64,000 nt of DNA from Pelomyxa schiedti (GCA_020536535.1 JAHLWZ010000373.1:1-64000), one strand, 5' to 3'; numbered from the stretch's first letter, positions 11,187-34,494 are shown. Notes: generated by a model not told the origin, from the letters alone. Translations and numbers: made by a program.

Positions 11187-12766
11187 TTAAAAGTTTTTGG
11201 CATGAAACTCTGTGGTTTCATTTTCCACAAACACGAGAGTTTGCCCAATGGTTTTCTTCCACTCCACAAGGCGCGCTATAAGTGTATCGATTTGGGCAGA
11301 ATCCTGTAGGAATTAGTGACTACAGGAACAAAACAAAGTGGGGATATTTACAAGAACTCTTGGCTTGATCCAGGAAATCTCAACTTGCTGGGCTACTTCA
11401 TCTATTGTGCCCTTGACCAAGCCGAGAGAGAGCGCCTTCATGACGAGTGTCTCGACCTATAGAATTGTGGGTTTATTTGGAAACCAAGGGCCGGTTTTGA
11501 TTACAAACCTCATCCACATTACGGGCTGTGGCTGTGGCAATATCCGCAAAAGAGAGGCAGTGGTCTTGTGCCGGACGTTTGAATACCAGTTGCATCAGTG
11601 CGAGAATAGAAATCTTTTGGCGCATAGCTGCAACATTCCTGGCTAATTGCTATTCTTGATTAATATGGAACTGAGGAATCGGGGGAAAATAAAACCTCAT
11701 TTCTCTGGACATCACTGGCGAGCACTGCTTCAAAGGCAGCCATATCACCACTATTGAAGGCAGTAAGCAAGGTATGTATCCAGGAAAGAGAAGATGTCTC
11801 AAGCAAGCGTTTGCTAATAGGATGTGCCATCTAAGTAGATTACTCACAAATCTTAGTTTTATTTTACTTACAAATTCCCCAAAGTTATAAATGTTAGGAT
11901 GAATCAAGGCACATAAGGCCATATCGAGAGCCAGCCCAGTCTGAACTTCCGTTGTGTATTCATGGAGATCAGCAAAATGCAAAAACTGCATCCCCATGGC
12001 GAAAAACTGTTCTTGGTCTCCTTTTATCTTGAGATTACCTGTAAGAATTCTATATCAACTTGGTTGGAGTACTTTGGAAAATTCGGTGCACAGCTTGTAA
12101 AACTCGGCACAAACTACAGGGTCTAAACCTGCTACACCCTCAAGTTCTTCTTGTGCGTGTTCCATGTAGTCTCTAGTGTTTGTAAGGACAGCATTGGGGA
12201 AAAAAGGGGTACGAGAAACAGACCTTGCTTTTAAAATATTTTGTGGTTCTGGTACTCTAAGAAAGAGCAAACCAAGTATAGCGGTAACAAATATGTGTGC
12301 GCCTTTGTCGGCTTTTATCTTGTTAATGAAGTCCGTGAAAAAGGTTATTCCATCAGCAACTAGATAGAGAAAGTCAGCAATTACCCCTGGAAGGGTTTAA
12401 GTACCAGAGTACTGAGTGGCAATGCGCTTAGCCAGCTTTGTGAGAGTGAGGAGGTTTAATTTAGTCTCGAAGTCCCGAATAAAGTTTTGGTACAGCTCAA
12501 TGAGCTCGTTCTGTGCGTGATCGTCCTTTTTCATAAACATTTCCAAGTAGTCAGTGAGTTGGTGCCAGTTCCTATTGCACAAAACCCGTCATTTGTTGTA
12601 GTTTTATCTTGCATTGTTTTTATTTTATATAAAGTACAAAATACACGTGATTCAAAAAAAAAAAATACCTTCTCTCGTAGAGTGAGGCCATTGTGGAGTA
12701 ATCACCGGCATGACGTGTGCACGTGTTCATTTGGTGCTCCAGAAACGTACGCACTTTTGCGCTCAT
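11187..12766 (-). CDS. PSMD13: 26S proteasome non-ATPase regulatory subunit 13 (Rpn9), multi-exon
   Basis: Motifs [49 protein letters not shown] and the C-terminal RLVEWKK. ATG 12766, TAA 11187. Confidence 0.93.
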
Positions 12767-13019
12767 TTTCGATCTAACTTAGTCTAAAGGGGTGTCGCTG
12801 GCTGTGGCTTGTTGTTCAATTTTTGTTTCCCTTTTCGATTAGTTTCGGTCCCAGCTCCTCAGGATGAACCCACAGATTGCTTTTCCTTCATGACTCTTGG
12901 TGCATAGTGCATTATAGAGGTGGGTGCTATTGATGACCTCAGTCAGACCCTTCAGCTAGGCGAAGAACCAGCGAAAATTAGGAGATTCGTTCATTCGTTG
13001 AATCTTTTAAACCCAGACA

Positions 13020-15758
13020 ATGGGGCTGCATGTTGGGGTTGTGTCACTCGTGGTCGTACTTACGGTGTCGTGTTTGTTGCATGTTGATGCATCTGTGACG
13101 TACACTGCTGGTTGCCTCAAGACATCTAGTGGGTCATTCCAGGTCTGTAGTATCTCCTGTTTTGCCGACGCGAAGCCCTTTTTTTTTTTCTTTTGGATTT
13201 ACACTTGTTTCACGCACTGGGGACATTTTAATGAGTGTGGTGCACTTCAAGTTCGTATTAACATTGTGAAAGATTGTCTTGGATGTTGGTCGTAACTCGC
13301 AGTACCTTGCGTGGGCTCAATATAACGACTCGCTGGATGACGTTGGGTGGGGCACTTTGCACGTTCATGCCTCACATGACGAGAGCCACACTGACGATGA
13401 CCTGATGTACTGCGCCGGCCTGGTGGAAGGCAGTCACCATTCTTTGTTAGGAGAGTTAGCGGCTGACATTGATTAGGAGCTTTGACACACACCAGAATGT
13501 CACAACATTATAAAATTTATGCTGACGGTATCTTGTCTGACTTTGGCACCACCACATGGCCAGATGATTTAATTACTTACATGAATGACAACATTGATTA
13601 CACAAACAATATGATTTCCGCTCATGTGTGTTTCCATTCAATGGGTTGTTTGCTGTTTCCCCTTTTTGTTAAGTAAAAAAATAGGCTGCCTCTGATCCAT
13701 GGTGGCGACAAGCTGGTTATGTGGTTGCACACACAAATGGCATTTTGGATGGATATCACCTATATCAATTAGCAGGCGAACAAAATATAAGGTTAACTTC
13801 TTTTTACTCTCAACAACAATTCTCATTATCTCAGTTATGTTGATATGTGGATCTATCAGTCTGCAGGTGATATGGATGACATTAGTCTGTTTATTTCACC
13901 AAGCAATTGGGTTGAAACTGCAAGTATGGTTCCATTTGCCTAGGTACTAAATTCATATTCTCCTAGATGGGAAGCATATCAAGGCTCCAAGTGGGTGGAC
14001 GTAGTGGGCGTTTTTCTTTAATTTAATGAATTTAGGTGACCAGTGGTATGACACACATCATCATTGCTCTGGAATGGTTTTCCTTCCAAGTGATTCTAGT
14101 GATATCTACTTTGCCCAGGTTTCTCTTTAATTTTAAACAAAAATCGTCTAAACCCCCATCAGGATTCTTGGTCTGCAATCAATACCATGAATAGAGTTCT
14201 GAAGGTTGTAGGATCCTTTCGTGTCGCGCACTCATTTCCAACCACAGGAGTACGATTTTCAACTCACAGAGCCGTCAACAGCCTCCACTAAATGGACTTT
14301 TTCATCCCACCCTGGCCTTGGATATTCTATGGATGACTTCTGGGAATTAGACTCTGACTTACTTGTTCTAGAGGTATTCATGCCTTGCCTAAATTTTTAT
14401 CTTATTCTCTTTAGACAACTTTGCACAACTGGAACACAACTTTGTATGAGTTATACTGCACACCAAGGGTTTGTTTTTCCCCTACCTTCAGCCGTCTAAA
14501 CAACAACTCCTCGGTATTTAGACCATTCTTTGCTGGCTTAGAGTTCAGGTACCTTTTCTTTCATTCTTTGCACAAATAACACACCTCCTTAGATCGCCAA
14601 TAGGTTTATTTCAAATATGTCTTTTGTTCACAGAGGTTATTGACCTCCCATAAGGATGTCCTCTGACGGTAGAACTTGGTGCAGTAACTTCATACGAGAA
14701 GTGTGCCTACTATTCCCACTTGATAACCTCTGACTCTTCTAACAGAACTCTGGAACGTACAATAATCAATATGTAGTATGGTCTTTATCGTTTCACAAGT
14801 AATGTCTTGTAGTTTGTTGTTGACACCAAGAAATTCACTCCTGGCACTAAGCCCACTTCTGGTCTTCTCTGGGCTATTGAACAACTTCCAGGAGAGTATG
14901 TGGCAATTTTTGGAGTGTAATGAAACATTAACAACAATAATCATTAGGTATGAGATGGGGGATAGAACAGCTGAGTTGGTTGCAAATACTTACGTGCCAA
15001 GCTACAACACCCCTTTCTTCACTAAAATTTATAACGATGCCGGCTACCCGGAGAAAGGTTCCGCCGGAACAAGGTTATGTTCACACTAACGAGAAGTAGT
15101 TGAAGAAACACAGAGCAACTACTGGACCTACTGGAACAACAGGTTAGTTATTCAGCACAAGTAACCAAATAATAACACTTTACAAGTCGAATGCTCATCA
15201 CTGAGCGCGATTTTGCTTCTATCGATTCTTATGAGGCCTTTAAGGTTTGTTGGGTCTCACAGGTCACTTTTTTTTACCTGTCTTGCATACAACAGTCCTT
15301 CATGAGATACAACGATTGGGAGAACGACCCCCTGTCCAATGAAGACCCCGCAGAATCTATACAATCGCGTTATGATCTAAGACCCGACAGCTGTATTCCA
15401 TCTGGTACGGGATGTTACAACAGACTTCTGCAATCTAAAATACTCTAACAGGAACCATGAACCTCTGCCCTAGTGCTTTTGCAGGCCTGGATGCAAAAAC
15501 GACAAACTACCAACTATCACAGAATTTAATGTTTGATGCCATCAGTAGCCCTCAATATGAAACACAGCCTGTCTGGGTGTTTGGTGTAAGCTTTTCGATT
15601 CCTATTGTCATGAGCCTCATTCACACCCCTAGGTTGGGAAATGGGCTGATGTCGAATGGGATGGGCTTCCTCAAGTCTGGAAGGTACACCCTTTTTGTTT
15701 GTTTCAAGTCCCTAATGAACTACAGTTCCCTTGGATTCAATTTGCCCCAGATAAGTAG
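13020..15758 (+). CDS. Phospholipase B-like (PLBD/laminin-A family, Ntn-hydrolase), secreted/lysosomal, multi-exon
   Basis: N-terminal signal peptide. Motifs GWGTLHV..LMYCAGLVEG, nucleophile segment HHCSGMV..IYFAQ, FSSHPG..SMDDF, SYNTPF, MRYNDW..DP..I.SRYDL and GLDAK. Stop TAG 15758. Confidence 0.92.
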
Positions 15759-25748: not shown

Positions 25749-28700
25749 ATGACAAGCACAGCAACCAACCAACCAGCAAAGATGTTCCAGAAGTTGTTGG
25801 AAAAGGGTGTTTGCAATGGCGTGGGACCCCTCCAGCGGTTCTTCCAGACTGACCCATACAGCGTTCCCGTGGCGAACGTGGTGGATACCAAGGTCTTAAA
25901 GATCCGATACCCACATGAAATTGGAGATCCAGTAAGAGAAGCTGGGGTGAGGCTGACAACCGATCTACACGTTGTGGACGTCCTCATCCCTGACTCCGTC
26001 ATTGTGGCAGTCCGAATTTACTCAAAGACAGTTTGTTCCTCACTTCCCCCCTTCCCCCTCCCATTTTATCATTCTCTTCACCTCCCTCTTCGTTGGTTCC
26101 TTTGCTGACACCACACAACAGGGTGAAGTTCCTTCAGTCGAGGATGGGATGACGATGTACCCCAACACGAGGAGCATTGTGGGAGACACCTTTGCTGACC
26201 TGTGCGCTATCATCCACCATGGTTTGAAATGGGTAACAAGCAAAAACACGTTCCCCCCAAAACAAACACATGATGCGCCCCACGCACGTTACACCCGACA
26301 ACAAAAATGACACGCACCATGAGAGAAACGCCTGTAACTTTATTTGCAGGAAGGCGAACCGCAAATCAGGGAAACCGGCGTTCAGACGAAAGTTCCCGAA
26401 GACACGTACGCGCCAGTAGAGATCGTCACAGATAACGTGTATGGCCCGGCGCTCAAGGTGGTCGTCACGAGGGGCAACCCCGTCACCATCACCGTGTTCG
26501 CCAACAAGAAGTCCGCAGGTCCGCTCTGCTCCACGTTCCGGAATCCGGAGGTAATATGTTCCCATTACAATGAACGTGTCGTGGTTGACGATGCGTTTTT
26601 TGCCACAGTGGACGATGGTGTCATCAGATATTCTGTTCAAGACTTTGCAGGTGGTCGAGTACAAATACGAAGGGACCATGAGACAGGAGTGCTCCACGTA
26701 CTGGCACAGGAAAAAACTTCCGTTCTGTCAGTATCTTGGTTCGCCACCCTAAACAGTTAAACCTATGTTCCTGATCACTGCCGTGCAGGATTTGGGGAGA
26801 AGGGAGGAACAAATCTGTGCATGAACTCGCAGCACCTACAGTTCACCAACTGTGACAACTACCTGTATGAGGAGGTCTACAAGGTGGGACCGACTGACCC
26901 GAGCGAGCCACTGTATCACAGCAACCCCTTCTGGATCGAGTATGTCCCTGACAGACCCCTCGTCGGCGTTTACCTGGATTCTGTTGCTCCAGTATGAAAG
27001 AGCCCATTTCAAACTCCTCACTAAATCACCTGACAAGAAGCGCACTCTGCACCATCCTCAATCACACAAACCACACTAACCTACAAACCAAGAGTTTTGT
27101 GGACCTTGGCCCCGCTGAGTCAACCGAGATCGCCGTAGGGACATTGGTGTCACGATTCAGCTATTACATTATGGTGCAGAGCAGGCACCCGTATGACATT
27201 ACTTCGCTGTACTGCAAGTTGGAAGGTGCTGGGAGGGTGTTCCCCAAGTGGGTCCTTGGCTATCACCAGGGAAAGTTTGGATGGACTTCCAAGGGAGAAG
27301 TGCTCGACAGTGCAAAGAAGTTCCGTGATTGTGAGATACCCATTGACAGCTTCAACATCGACATAGACGTTCAGCACGAGCTACAGACCTTCACGATCAA
27401 CGAAAGGTTCAACGGGGTCTTCCAGGACCTCCTCAAGATGGGCTTGAAGAGCTCCACCAACATCACCCCCTACATAGCGCAAAATCACCCCGCTGCAATA
27501 GCAGTCTTGCAAGACACGACCAAGAGGGTCTTTGTGGGAAATGAGATGGCAGGAAATCCGCAGGGAAACCCTCCAGCATCGACGGAATACTCTCCGTTCT
27601 TAGGCCAAGTGGCGTACTCCCTAGAGTGCCCAAGGGGACTCTACCCAGACCTGGGTCACCCTGACGCCTACAGCTGGTGGCAGAAGTCATACGATACGCT
27701 ACTGAGGGCGGGGCTCAGCTACGTCTGGCAGGACATGGTGACGCCGGACATGCCCGAGGACATAGACGAGTGGAGATCTTTCCCACTCGACCTTATGCTT
27801 ACCGACAACACTTACAAAAGGCCTGGGGAGTCGTCGAGCAGCGGAACACCTCCAACAAGCAAGCCCTTGTCTAAGATTCCGGCGATTTGCATGAGGAACA
27901 TGTTCGCTCTGAACCTGCTGAGGGCCACTTTCAATGCGTGGGACAAACACGAGCTGCTGGCCACCAAGAGGCCGTTTATCATTGGAAGGGGAGGTTGCTC
28001 TGGGATGCACCGGTTCGGAGCCCTATGGACTGGTGACAACTCCGGCACGTGGGACTTCATGAAGGTCAACCTCGTCCAGTGCCTGTCCCTCGGGCTAAGT
28101 GGGCAGTTCATGTCTGGTGCCGACATTGGTGGGTTCGCCTGGGTCGATAACCAATCTTGGGTCGACCCAGAGTTGTTCATCAGGTGGCACTTGGCTGCTG
28201 CTTTCTTGCCTTGGTACCGCTGCCACTATAACGGCAAGTCCATCACCCCTTGGCCACCAAACGGCAACAAGTCAGGGAAGCTCTTCCAAGAAGTGTATGC
28301 ATTTGAAGAGCACGCAAATGAGGCACCTGACGACAGGCTTCTCTACACCAACGTGATGCCTGTATGCAAGTTTTACATTGAGCTGCGCTACAGGTTCATT
28401 CAGCTGCTCTACGACGGCATGTTCGGCAGCAATCGGAACGGGATTCCAATCTCCAAGCCCCTCTTCCTCCAAGATGGGTTCAGGGATCCCTCGCTCCACT
28501 TCGAGATGCTTGAGTACTGCAGCAACGAATACCTTGTTGGCTCTGACATGCTTGTGGCCCCCATCCTCAACAAGGGTAACAATGGAACGAGGAAGGTCTA
28601 CCTGCCGGCGGGAAGCAAGTGGTACCCGTTCACCAATAACTTCGCCCCTCTCGACCCTGAAACCAGAGGGAGGGAGTGGCTGAGCAAAGGAGTTCGCAAC

Positions 28701-29420
28701 CCGCCTTACGGTAGTATGGCAAGGCCGGTGGAGGGCGGCAGGCAGTTCGACTACTACGCCTCCCTGCAGTCCCCGTCTGACAAGCCGGACCACATTCCTT
28801 ACCTGCTGCCGATATACCTCCGTGCTGGGACGGTGATACCCACGGTCGAGCTGGAGCAGTTCGTTGGACAGAGGACACAAGATGGCAAGATGCAACCAGT
28901 GACACTCAATGTTATGCCAGGTGCCCCTTGTTCCGCAAAGGGCCGCTCCAAATACCAGCTTTACCTCGACGATGGCGAGTCGAGGGTGTCTTCTCCCTGC
29001 CGTGGAGTCTTTGACGAACGGCGTGGCTACAAGGACCAGTACGTGCACATATGTGTTCAGAACAGCGTGCACGAGGAGAGCAATGTGCTCGTCTCTCGCA
29101 AGGTGGAGCTTGACTGCCTCAACAGCCCTGACGTACCAGAACCCACCATCGCCGACCACACCAAGTGGTTGTGTGTTGCCTTCCACCACGACGCGGACCA
29201 CAACGACGTCTGGAAGAAGTACACCGTCTTTGTGCGCATTGGGAACGAAGAGAGGTTCCCGCTGCCGGTCGTTCCCAGCCTCACTGAATTCCTCGTCAGC
29301 AAGACCTCCCCTGTGGCCTTCCTGGATGACACCTGCCGTGTGACGCTGGTGAGGTTTGGTCAGCCCAACGAACCCATTACCAAGGGCAAGTACGTTGTGG
29401 TGACCCTCGAGCTCAACCTG
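25749..29420 (+). other. agll: Domain: alpha-1,4-glucan lyase (GH31 lyase subgroup)
   Basis: Motifs YLGFGEKGG, EPLYHSNPFW, FPKWVLGYHQ, DIDVQ, GLKSSTNITP, YPDL, nucleophile WQDMVTP (Asp 27732-27734), acid/base WTGDN (Asp 28035-28037), ELRYRFIQLLYD, PVEGG and YLDDGESR. These match recalled red-algal/fungal lyases, and the hydrolase-type DMNEP is absent. Confidence 0.9.
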
Positions 29421-32057
29421 TGTCCCCGTATGATTCGCACGGTCCTTGCTGACAAGCTTGATGATGGGTACTGGATCCACACTGCTGACCTTCACAGGAC
29501 CGGCAGGTCTGACCTCATTGCTTACGGCCTTGGGAAGGGCCAGATCACCGTCTATGACAACCTCGGTGGTGGAAAGTGGTCACCTGGCCAAGTGATTCAA
29601 GAGGTAACGCATGGATGCTTGTGTTTTTTTTTCGCTTTTGCTCTCCTATTCCATCATTCACCACTGTTGCTGACCAAAATTCCCCTCCCCCTCCCCAAAA
29701 CAACAATTTTTCAAGTTGATTGGACCGGTTTCCACAGACACATGGGACATCACAGGCAATGGCTACCCAGACTTAATCACATGCTACGAATATGGCAAAA
29801 ACATGATGGAACCCGATCCAAATGGTGGAAAGATCGTGTGGCTCGAAAATCCAGGGACTGGAGGGATGGTTCCATGGAAGCAGCACTACATTGGCCAGTC
29901 AATGTCCATGCACAGGCTTCGCGTCGGTCATTTCACTGATGCAACACGTATTCAGGTGCGTTCTTCAAATCCTTACCCCAAACCGTGTTTTAAATCACGG
30001 CGAGGTTCTGGGCCTGCCGATCGTGGGAGCAGTTGGAGATTTTGGAGCTCCTGTCCCTCTGTGCTTGTTCACGGCACCAACAGATGTGATAAACGCAACT
30101 AGCTGGGAGGCCACCAGAATTGACACGAGTATGTGCACTTCTATGGGCTTCCCTTACTCTGACGTCGTGTCTCCTCCCCCTTTTTTTCCTCCTTCATTCA
30201 GAGGGTTCGACATTCCATGTGATTCATGAAGTGTGTCTGATGAAGAACCCTGCAACATGGCTTGACTCCTTCATCATTGCGTCACAGGAGGGTTTGACAA
30301 AGTTTGTTTATGATCCTGCTGCTGGTGCCTTTAATGTAACTCTCTTGACTCAGTCCCCTTCTTTTTTTGACTTGTTTGGCAGATGGAGTCAATCACCAAA
30401 GGAGAGGTCCACGGCAAGGTATTCAATGGGTGTGGCAACGTGACCACGTTCAGGCACAGTGGCAAGGAGTGCATTGCGGCGATAGAACCGTTCCACGGGT
30501 ACGTACTGACCGTGTATGTGCAGAGACTATCAGGAGGATGGTCACAGCATATCGTGGATGTGTACGGCGTGCCCAACAAGAAAGAGGAGGGCCCAGCGCA
30601 TCACTTGGTCACTGCAGACATCAACAAAGATGGGGAAGAAGAATTGCTTGTCGCACTGAGGGGTCCTGCTCCTGCTGAGGGTGTTTTCATGTACAAGTGC
30701 AGCATGTCCTCCCCAGACGACGTCAAGTTCATCAAGTACCGGCTCACGCCAGACAGTGCTGCCAGGATTGCAGTGGGTGACTGGGACGGCAACGGCTCAA
30801 TGTAAGTGTAACTTTACTCGTCTCCCCAACTCTGTTCCATCTCTCTTGCTATCTCTTCTTTCTCCATTTTTACAACATCTCAGTGATATTGCCACGATTG
30901 GATACTCCGTGGCTGGCTACTTTGAAGCATGCAACAGCCGAGTGGCAGTTTTCTCGAACACTCTCACCCCGTCCCTCGATGCCTTGCCACTCAATCGAAT
31001 ACCGTTCCGAACTTGTCAAATATGGAATGACGTCGCATATAGCCAGAAGCAAGTCTCATCTGCAGATGCATGCGAGCTCACTATCTCGTTTGCTCAAATC
31101 GAGCCATCAGCAGAGGGGGCAAGGTACATTTCAGAGCCGCTTATCCTCTGCGCACAGGGTACAGAGACGCACTGCATGCGCATCATGTTGCTGCCTCCTT
31201 ATGCACATGCCTTCATGCCAGGGCTGGTGGACGGCTTCGAGAGCTACATCAAGATTCTCGCAGGTGGCCTCTCTAACCCATTCATCCCAATCTTGGCCAA
31301 TCCCCTCGAAAAGCGGTCCGCAATATTGCGCAGTATGTACCCACTCAGAAAAACCCCTCTTGAACCCAAAAAAAAAAAGATCCATTGGTTCAGGCCGGAC
31401 CAGAAGGGGCACTGTTTATGCTGTTCACAAAGCTTTATGGGGCAGCCAAAGAAATCACAGATACCTCAACACTGCGGTGGGTTCTGCCCAACGAGAATGC
31501 AACAGTGATGCCCTGGAAGCCATTCCCCCCGTTCGAGCGCTTCTTCAACTCGCGCTATATCCACGTCAACGTGGGCGGGACCCCCGTGGCCAGCATTCAG
31601 TTCTGGGCAGCTGGCCTTGGTGTGGACTGTGGCCTTCACGACCACAGCGATTTGGACGCAACCGCCACCTTTGGCGAAGTGCACCTGGCCCTTTACAATG
31701 GCAATGGTGATGGAGGCATGGTCTGGAAGAACGAAGGCGCCCCTGATGGCCACCTTGCCCTCCTTGCGGGTGAAGAGCATGGCCCGATCTGGGTCAAGGT
31801 ACCGCCGTGATCTCCACTCCCCCCTTTTCCTCCACTCCTAACAGCAAACCCAGAAACAGGGAGAGAAGAACGACAACGGCGGCTTGAAATACCCCATGCA
31901 CAAGTGGCAGGCGGGAGGAGTGTATGCTGGTGACGCCACTGCCGCTGCAGCCGACAAGTTTGACGTCTGGGTGGCTGTCGAGTACAGGGCGGCACTGCTC
32001 CAGCGCAGTCTCTTGATGGAGGCCAAGATCAAGAGGATGTTCTCTGAGAGGCCTTGA
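25749..32057 (+). CDS. Fusion enzyme: GH31 alpha-1,4-glucan lyase (EC 4.2.2.13) plus aldos-2-ulose dehydratase/isomerase (AUDH); roughly 1750-1800 aa (estimate), multi-exon
   Basis: Spliced model from ATG 25749 to TGA 32057. One 2511-nt exon (27093-29603) holds the lyase catalytic barrel, its C-terminal domains and the AUDH N-terminus in one frame without a stop. No signal peptide. Confidence 0.92.
29430..32057 (+). other. audh: Domain: aldos-2-ulose dehydratase/isomerase (beta-propeller plus two cupins); lacks the C-terminal lectin-like domain of the fungal enzyme
   Basis: Propeller motifs DGYW, YGLG, DITGNGYPDLI..YG..GGKIVWLENPG, MHRLRVGHFT, IHEV, EPFHG, AHHLVTADINKDGEEELLVA and DIATIGYSVAGYFE. 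Cupin motifs IQFWAAG..CGLHDH..FGEVH..NGNGDGGM, EHGPIW, YPMHKWQAG and FDVWVAVEY. Confidence 0.92.
31077..31154 (+). repeat. 78-bp segment (AUDH exon) with a perfect inverted copy at 34417-34494
   Basis: The reverse complement of 34417-34494 equals 31077-31154 base for base. Confidence 0.95.
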
Positions 32058-34416: not shown

Positions 34417-34494
34417 TGCGCAGAGGATAAGCGGCTCTGAAATGTACCTTGCCCCCTCTGCTGATGGCTCGATTTGAGCAAACGAGATAGTGAG
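34417..34494 (-). repeat. Inverted copy of 31077-31154
   Basis: 78/78 identity on direct comparison. Confidence 0.95.

Follow-up and report, generated by a model that had tools for sequence, protein, structure and literature searches.

Does one gene of the anaerobic amoeba Pelomyxa schiedti encode both an alpha-1,4-glucan lyase and the enzyme that acts on its product? The question was raised by the locus at positions 25749-32057 of JAHLWZ010000373.1:1-64000 (assembly GCA_020536535.1), a stretch of 64,000 nucleotides that is referred to below as the window; all features of the gene lie on the plus strand. In a preliminary description the locus had been read as a lyase-type GH31 enzyme fused to an aldos-2-ulose dehydratase/isomerase (AUDH). 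Both activities belong to the anhydrofructose pathway, which has been described as a 'third' route of glycogen and starch breakdown and which, to our knowledge, is biochemically known only from some fungi and red algae.

The gene was rebuilt by homology-guided splicing, with the Mastigamoeba balamuthi protein P0001 as the guide, and was found to comprise 13 exons and 12 GT-AG introns of 46-117 nucleotides (nt), encoding 1811 amino acids (aa). The spliced model was the same as NCBI entry KAH3763549.1 (P0259, 1808 aa), save for 3 residues at the final intron acceptor (31844 versus 31853); this entry is named 'glycoside hydrolase [Pelomyxa schiedti]' and sits on an 88-kb contig of the same assembly. 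A Pfam search of the spliced protein returned the domains that the preliminary description had led us to expect, namely GH31 (PF01055, E 4e-57), AUDH propeller (PF22301, E 7e-39) and AUDH cupin (PF18637, E 5e-23).

The two halves of the protein meet inside exon 6 (27093-29603), within a frame that is open without stops from 26952 to 29936. By reading frame and alignment the junction was placed between R1088 and M1089 (29427..29432, the M1089 codon starting at nt 29430), and the sequence across it, ...VVTLELNLCPR followed by MIRTVLADKLDDGYW..., contained no stop or frameshift. The earlier claim that the GH31 enzyme runs without a stop into the AUDH within this one exon was therefore borne out, both by our model and by the NCBI entry. 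Stand-alone AUDHs of fungi, bacteria and an uncultured eukaryote start 7-15 residues ahead of the DGYW motif that follows M1089, and an unfused GH31 homologue ends near the junction, so that a complete GH31 C-terminus is welded to a natural AUDH N-terminus with practically no linker.

A homology search for other fusions, which had been recommended at the outset, identified two. One is a further P. schiedti gene, KAH3732937.1 (P0154, contig L001), which shares the exon pattern and whose product has the same architecture and is 90% identical. When exon 6 was searched with HMMER against 1.84 billion representative proteins, there was one full-exon match that included the AUDH start, the M. balamuthi protein P0001 from EukProt; residues 1-836 of the query aligned to residues 1082-1918 of P0001 with 51% identity, across the junction, and its domain order (GH31, AUDH propeller, AUDH cupin) was that of the P. 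schiedti fusion. Among the proteins of 1429-4546 aa in a 5.8-billion-protein set, GH31 and AUDH were combined only in these three, two from P. schiedti and one from M. balamuthi. The closest other GH31 protein, P0002 (49-53% identical), is encoded on a 248-kb eukaryotic metagenome contig (L002, 39% G+C) and is unfused; its open reading frame (ORF) ends 7 residues before the junction, and no AUDH was found within 10 kb downstream on that contig. Sequence conservation continued straight across the junction. These results showed that the fusion is real and that it is conserved in two archamoebal genera. No RNA-derived contig for the fusion protein was present in the sequence collections searched.

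The M. balamuthi protein (m51a1_g9193, 2598 aa) has an extra N-terminal part, from residue 1 to about 790, that carries a zf-C3HC (NuBaID) domain. No zf-C3HC gene was found upstream of the fusion gene within the P. schiedti window, and this part of P0001 may be a wrongly merged neighbouring gene.

The GH31 half consists of an N-terminal beta-sandwich (aa 1-357, exons 1-6, 25749..27236) with a weak Gal_mutarotas_2 match at aa 167-313 (E 5e-5, under the Pfam cut-off), a catalytic (beta/alpha)8 barrel (aa 358-750, 27237..28415), and proximal (aa 759-891) and distal (aa 892-1088) C-terminal domains (28440..29429; PF21365, E 6.5e-11). The best solved relative of the exon 6 product was the red-algal alpha-1,4-glucan lyase 2X2H (E 5.5e-35). 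All of the approximately 40 best library matches carried a WQDM-x-x-P motif, with W(N/I)DMNEP in more distant matches. A maximum likelihood tree (quick search, LG+G4) was constructed from 62 GH31 sequences, in which the characterised Morchella and Peziza lyases were represented by uncharacterised fungal relatives from Rhizina, Terfezia, Fusarium and Calocera. The WQDM clade was split from the WNDMNEP hydrolases with a Shimodaira-Hasegawa-like approximate likelihood ratio (SH-aLRT) support of 100. Within this clade the archamoebal sequences formed one branch with the L002 sequence and P0003, a bacterial-style protein (support 96), and this branch fell inside a crown group with bacterial and fungal WQDMTTP sequences (support 100). 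Adjoining the crown group were P0048 and P0058, the former a close relative of 2X2H over its full length (E 6e-165). Some relatives in the clade are named alpha-1,4-glucan lyase in NCBI or UniRef (Colletotrichum, Dacryopinax), and Pezizales (Rhizina, Terfezia) are present in it.

Signature positions were mapped through the 2X2H alignment (SEQRES offset +11) and compared in 128 aligned GH31 proteins. Asn432 (27459..27461), which lies within the sequence STNITP, corresponds to Asn459 of the red-algal lyase, a position occupied by Ile in hydrolases. The motif VWQDMVTP (Asp523 to Thr526, 27732..27743) contains the predicted nucleophile Asp523, equivalent to D553, and Thr526, equivalent to V556, where hydrolases have Glu. 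The predicted general acid, Asp624 (28035..28037, motif WTGDN), is equivalent to D665. At these positions the fusion protein therefore reads N-D-T-D, compared to I-D-E-D in hydrolases. The pattern N-D-(T/C/V/D/S)-D was present in 35 of the 40 WQDM-clade members, with Asn at the first position in 37; the exact pattern of the fusion protein was found in 21 of the 40, Thr being the commonest residue at the V556 position, and N-D-V-D in five, including the red-algal-type P0048 and P0058. By comparison, 66 of 77 W.DM.EP sequences, which were taken as hydrolases, had I-D-E-D. Replacement of Glu by Val at the Val556 position reportedly pushes the Sulfolobus glucosidase MalA toward lyase activity, in work by Rozeboom from 2013. 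According to PMC12441222, Asn459, which helps the nucleophile Asp553 to act as a base, is replaced by Ile in glycosidases, and lyases lack the residues with which hydrolases activate water. The presence of Asn432 and Thr526 where hydrolases have Ile and Glu thus favoured a lyase. Clade membership and signature residues together supported the original assignment of this half as lyase-type, not hydrolase-type.

Pfam searches of the open stretches placed the GH31 TIM barrel and the GH31 C-terminal domain in the frame 26952-29936; further downstream, in shorter stretches, they located AUDH_beta_propeller, FG-GAP_3 and AUDH_Cupin, corresponding to a seven-bladed VCBS-type beta-propeller (aa 1089-1478, 29430..30962) and a cupin region (aa 1479-1811, 30963..32054). 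The top match of residues 1080-1808 was the Phanerochaete AUDH 4A7K (E 2.6e-67 by sequence), the aligned parts being chain residues 32-433 for the propeller and 594-731 for the second cupin. His155 of 4A7K, for which a catalytic role at the Zn site of the propeller was reportedly proposed in Claesson's work of 2012, aligned with H1212 (29911-29913) in an MHRL motif. H1212, R1213, H1276, H1350, H1385, D1391, D1395 and E1399 did not vary among 92 propellers of amoebal, rotifer, fungal and bacterial origin. The cupin motif H1688-x-H1690...E1701-x-H1703 (31637-31684) aligned with HnH...EiH of 4A7K and was invariant across 19 full-length AUDHs; judged by the general cupin motif, these four residues would be Zn ligands. 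An AlphaFold2 model of the AUDH half, built on 19 relatives, had a mean predicted local distance difference test (pLDDT) score of 72 with a confident propeller, and a Foldseek search with this model returned 4A7K as the best match (E 9e-45; next match 9e-10).

This half had been called a complete AUDH, which was correct for the propeller and the cupin region. It did not hold for the C-terminal lectin domain (PF14200) of the 900-aa Phanerochaete enzyme, which is missing; the amoebal chain stops at a position corresponding to about residue 735 of 4A7K. PF14200 was carried by the fungal relatives and not by the amoebal, rotifer or L007 proteins. The lectin domain is probably not family-defining, being absent from most non-fungal relatives. 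Bdelloid rotifers (the P0155 cluster; Rotaria sp. Silwood1 CAF1283973.1 and others) have several AUDH genes, and the annotation of one of their AUDH families places propeller, cupin and phospholipase D domains (PF00614, PF13091) in a single protein of 1776-1842 aa. In the rotifer Adineta no GH31 gene was found within 10 kb of AUDH.

The same modules were found side by side in other genomes. The closest full-length AUDH, P0158 (33% identical, 728 aa, intronless), is encoded tail to tail with, and 389 bp from, an intronless WQDMTTP GH31 gene (1003 aa) at L007:10001-15587, on a metagenome contig of an uncultured eukaryote (ENA ERZ12293615 scaffold_1223_c1, 27% G+C). The pair lies among kinesin and KCNQ-channel gene fragments. 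When prokaryotes were scanned with each species represented by one genome, WQDM-type GH31 proteins were detected in 402 genomes, including many cyanobacteria, Ca. Electrothrix, Bacteroidota, Vibrio penaeicida, Paenibacillus and metagenome-assembled genomes (MAGs) of Methanosarcina. Gene neighbourhoods were counted at 80 of these prokaryotic loci (L010-L089); since many contigs are short, the counts are lower bounds. An AUDH-type propeller gene (approximately 410-500 aa) was present within a few kb of GH31 at 21 loci; these propellers were mostly 38-44% identical to that of the amoeba (30-34% in L014, L081 and L082). Directly adjoining GH31 at 53 loci was a conserved ORF of approximately 235 aa without a Pfam match. 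This family proved to be homologous to the C-terminal cupin of AUDH (hhalign probability 97.2%, E 3.6e-11), with which it shares HxxH, ExH, YPWH and VWxAxE motifs. Both the propeller and the cupin-like gene were found at 20 of the 80 loci, and at least one of them at 54. There was no AUDH neighbour at two further bacterial GH31 loci, L003 and L006.

In cyanobacteria and Electrothrix the gene order was propeller, cupin, GH31, as in Nostoc (L025:6891-12517) and Ca. Electrothrix (L027:6152-12280). In V. penaeicida (L082:9113-14868) and two Marinilabiliaceae loci (L087, L088) the order was GH31, propeller, cupin, collinear with the fusion, with gaps of 14-90 nt; in a Polarisedimenticolaceae locus (L081) GH31 was followed after 16 nt by the propeller and then by the contig end. 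Among the prokaryotic groups, the GH31 segments of L081-L089 were closest to that of the amoeba (43-46% identical). At the Nostoc locus a gene for a phosphoenolpyruvate (PEP)-utilising enzyme lies just upstream of the propeller, and a baeRF-family eRF1-like gene (12634-13803, minus strand) just downstream of GH31. Because the same modules adjoin as separate genes in many bacteria, the amoebae did not invent the GH31-AUDH pairing, which is an old module. Genes that are fused or that keep the same neighbours are a classic sign that their products catalyse successive steps of one pathway, and on this genomic evidence the little-known breakdown of glycogen through anhydrofructose probably occurs far more widely than has been reported.

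We consider it likely that one cytosolic polypeptide carries the anhydrofructose pathway from polymer to pyrone. A cytosolic location is suggested by the N-terminus, where, as stated in the preliminary description, no hydrophobic signal sequence was apparent by eye. In the proposed route the GH31 half would act as an alpha-1,4-glucan lyase on glycogen or maltodextrin: Asp523 would attack the glucose at the non-reducing end on its C1, Asp624 would serve as the acid, and the glucosyl-enzyme would be resolved through syn-elimination, not hydrolysis, to release 1,5-anhydro-D-fructose. The AUDH half would then use His1212 at the metal site of its propeller to dehydrate anhydrofructose, giving ascopyrone M, and the cupin metal site (H1688/H1690/E1701/H1703) would isomerise ascopyrone M to microthecin. 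As drawn, no step would require O2, adenosine triphosphate (ATP) or phosphate, which would make the route compatible with an anaerobe. Channelling of substrate between the fused halves is speculative; in the fungal enzyme the two AUDH sites are reportedly about 60 A apart, according to Claesson's 2012 study.

Could the single reading frame instead be an artefact of assembly or annotation in which two adjacent genes were merged? The P. schiedti genome is a single-cell SPAdes assembly (PMC8887013), the 2598-aa Mastigamoeba model with its zf-C3HC part may itself be mis-merged, and a 78-bp part of exon 11 has a perfect inverted copy approximately 3 kb downstream. However, the junction lies within one exon that is free of stops and frameshifts there, it recurs in two P. 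schiedti contigs that are 10% apart in protein sequence and in a different genus that was sequenced independently, and conserved sequence runs right across it. These observations largely refuted the artefact, which we regard as most improbable. A different challenge accepts the fusion and takes the GH31 half to be a hydrolase or transglycosylase (an alpha-glucosidase that acts on glycogen or oligosaccharides) and the AUDH-like half to act on a different 2-keto sugar, for example glucosone, or on some other substrate, with no anhydrofructose pathway. Several features of both halves weigh against the pathway as proposed. In the AUDH half the first cupin and the inter-domain segment were poorly conserved and poorly modelled, including a stretch at aa about 1479-1535, pLDDT was below 50 at model residues 391-447, which are disordered, and the template modelling (TM) score to 4A7K was only 0.50, because the domain orientation differs; the Zn ligands of 4A7K are those reportedly identified by Claesson in 2012. 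In the GH31 half Thr occupies the V556 position in place of Val, and none of the Thr-type proteins compared was confirmed as a characterised lyase; phmmer parted lyase from hydrolase only modestly (2X2H, E 5.5e-35; glucosidase II, 1e-31), most database names of clade members are 'alpha-glucosidase', and the archamoebal and bacterial members of the WQDM clade are known as sequences. The Phanerochaete AUDH also accepts glucosone, which it turns into cortalcerone, so the substrate need not be anhydrofructose. Nevertheless, both discriminating positions are lyase-type (Asn432, and no Glu at 526) and the WQDM clade stands cleanly apart from the hydrolases. That WQDM-type GH31 and AUDH are repeatedly fused or adjacent makes most sense if AUDH takes the product of GH31 as its substrate, and glucosone would need an O2-dependent pyranose oxidase, which is unlikely in an anaerobe. 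A hydrolase joined to an AUDH of other specificity was therefore judged unlikely.

Even with the lyase-AUDH chemistry as proposed, its role might be catabolic or metabolic and not antimicrobial: an ATP- and phosphate-independent mobilisation of glycogen, in which the pyrone or ascopyrone would serve as an intermediate, to be metabolised further or passed to endosymbiotic prokaryotes, and not a means of defence. The modules are housekeeping-like in many free-living cyanobacteria and other bacteria, where they lie beside genes such as that for a PEP-utilising enzyme; Pelomyxa lives with obligate syntrophic endosymbionts (PMC10579272); and the sequence says nothing on export. Conversely, there was no catabolic enzyme for microthecin or ascopyrone next to the fusion gene, and none is known to us. 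Both compounds are called antibacterial in fungi (PMC12441222). We lean against a purely metabolic role while regarding it as a real possibility.

With respect to origin, the fusion probably arose by the joining of neighbouring genes of a bacterial-type GH31-propeller-cupin cluster, possibly after lateral transfer. The nearest outgroup of the archamoebal GH31 sequences in the tree, P0003, is encoded on a bacterial-style contig, and together with the collinear bacterial clusters this fits lateral acquisition of a cluster followed by fusion in the ancestor of Pelomyxa and Mastigamoeba. The propeller tree gave a three-way polytomy, in which the archamoebal branch grouped with neither the bacterial propellers nor the eukaryotic full-length AUDHs. 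The double-cupin layout of the fusion resembles that of the eukaryotic full-length AUDHs. No Entamoeba protein was among the matches of the GH31 and AUDH protein searches. A broader reading, tentative and on the whole doubtful, is that the anhydrofructose pathway, far from being peculiar to fungi and red algae, would be an ancient and widespread unit of lyase-type GH31, propeller and cupin, which prokaryotic species hold by the hundreds (among them cyanobacteria, cable bacteria, Bacteroidota, vibrios and even Methanosarcina MAGs). On this reading the unit would have passed, probably from bacteria, to free-living Archamoebae, in which it would have been joined into a single channelling enzyme that turns their large glycogen stores into a pyrone with which prokaryotic partners or competitors are managed.

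Apart from exon 6, the homology-guided model consists of exons 1 (25749-26030), 2 (26122-26232), 3 (26350-26550), 4 (26609-26738), 5 (26789-26991), 7 (29716-29955), 8 (30005-30128), 9 (30202-30335), 10 (30383-30801), 11 (30884-31332), 12 (31380-31798) and 13, which includes the stop and extends to 32057 from 31845 or, with the alternative acceptor, from 31854. A three-frame read-through model of the 5' exons was ruled out by a stop at 26758 and by loss of the conserved ...GFGEKGG motif; two further small introns, 26551-26608 and 26739-26788, were therefore needed in the 5' part to restore the conserved '...YLGFGEKGG' motif. The resulting model contains a frame switch among the 5' exons in addition to intron 26551-26608, by which the fusion claim is unaffected. 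The G+C content was 52-55% over the fusion gene and approximately 45% for the whole window. The GT-AG introns and the neighbouring genes, which are eukaryotic (ATG17-like, RhoGEF, actin-like and RCC1), agreed with the earlier statement that the gene has spliceosomal introns and eukaryotic neighbours. The annotation of GCA_020536535.1 was produced with Augustus, PASA and EVM together with transcriptome data (PMC8887013). A 78-bp piece of exon 11 in the AUDH cupin region (31077-31154) has a perfect reverse-complement copy at 34417-34494, approximately 3.3 kb downstream, which could be a small inverted duplication or an artefact of single-cell SPAdes assembly.

When compared to the red-algal lyase of Gracilariopsis lemaneiformis (2X2H, EC 4.2.2.13), the GH31 half shares the domain plan of N-domain, (beta/alpha)8 barrel and two C-terminal domains, the WQDM nucleophile motif, the Asn at N459, the lack of Glu at the V556 position and membership of the same major clade. 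It differs in its low overall similarity, the aligned stretch being the catalytic core only, in the Thr at the 556-equivalent, in its grouping with bacterial and fungal WQDMTTP sequences and not with the red-algal branch, and in bearing a C-terminal AUDH. The Phanerochaete chrysosporium AUDH (4A7K, EC 4.2.1.110) likewise has a propeller and cupin, the MHRL His155 equivalent and the HxH..E.H motif, but identity is approximately 30-33%, the first cupin is divergent in the fusion, and the fungal enzyme is a separate protein with a C-terminal ricin-type lectin, whereas the amoebal one lacks the lectin and is joined to GH31. In Pezizales (Anthracobia, Morchella, Peziza) a glucan lyase, an anhydrofructose dehydratase and an ascopyrone tautomerase occur as separate enzymes (Yu et al. 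2004, as cited in PMC12441222); the predicted reactions, from glycogen through anhydrofructose to pyrones, are the same, and in the anaerobic amoebozoan they would be carried out by one chain. The prokaryotic clusters have the same three modules, in L082, L087 and L088 in the order of the fusion, but as separate genes and with a single short cupin protein in place of the double cupin.

Full-text literature searches returned no paper on a glucan lyase and an AUDH in one protein, none that reported the anhydrofructose pathway in Archamoebae and none that described a prokaryotic GH31-propeller-cupin cluster. The gene goes unmentioned in the Pelomyxa genome paper (PMC8887013), where the terms 'glycoside hydrolase', 'glucosidase' and 'glycogen' are likewise absent; neither 'lyase' nor 'GH31' occurs in 300,000 characters of the text of a 2024 review of prokaryotic alpha-glucan enzymes, and glucan lyases are described in PMC12441222 as fungal and red-algal enzymes. 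The suggestion that the fusion and an amoebal pathway were undescribed thus stood as far as papers are concerned; the protein sequence itself was already in NCBI and EukProt as a 'glycoside hydrolase'. Against the background of a known pathway, the new elements are the fusion and the lineage that carries it, together with a prokaryotic distribution that is apparently unreported.

A natural single-chain lyase-AUDH would offer a ready-made test of the channelling of a reactive keto-sugar and would be a compact biocatalyst for the conversion of starch to anhydrofructose-derived pyrones. It would also put the pathway in anaerobic, glycogen-rich amoebae that host prokaryotic endosymbionts. The 402 prokaryotic genomes with a lyase-type GH31, with AUDH-type neighbours at approximately two thirds of the examined loci, point to an unrecognised bacterial pathway, and this prokaryotic by-product of the analysis may matter more than the fusion itself.

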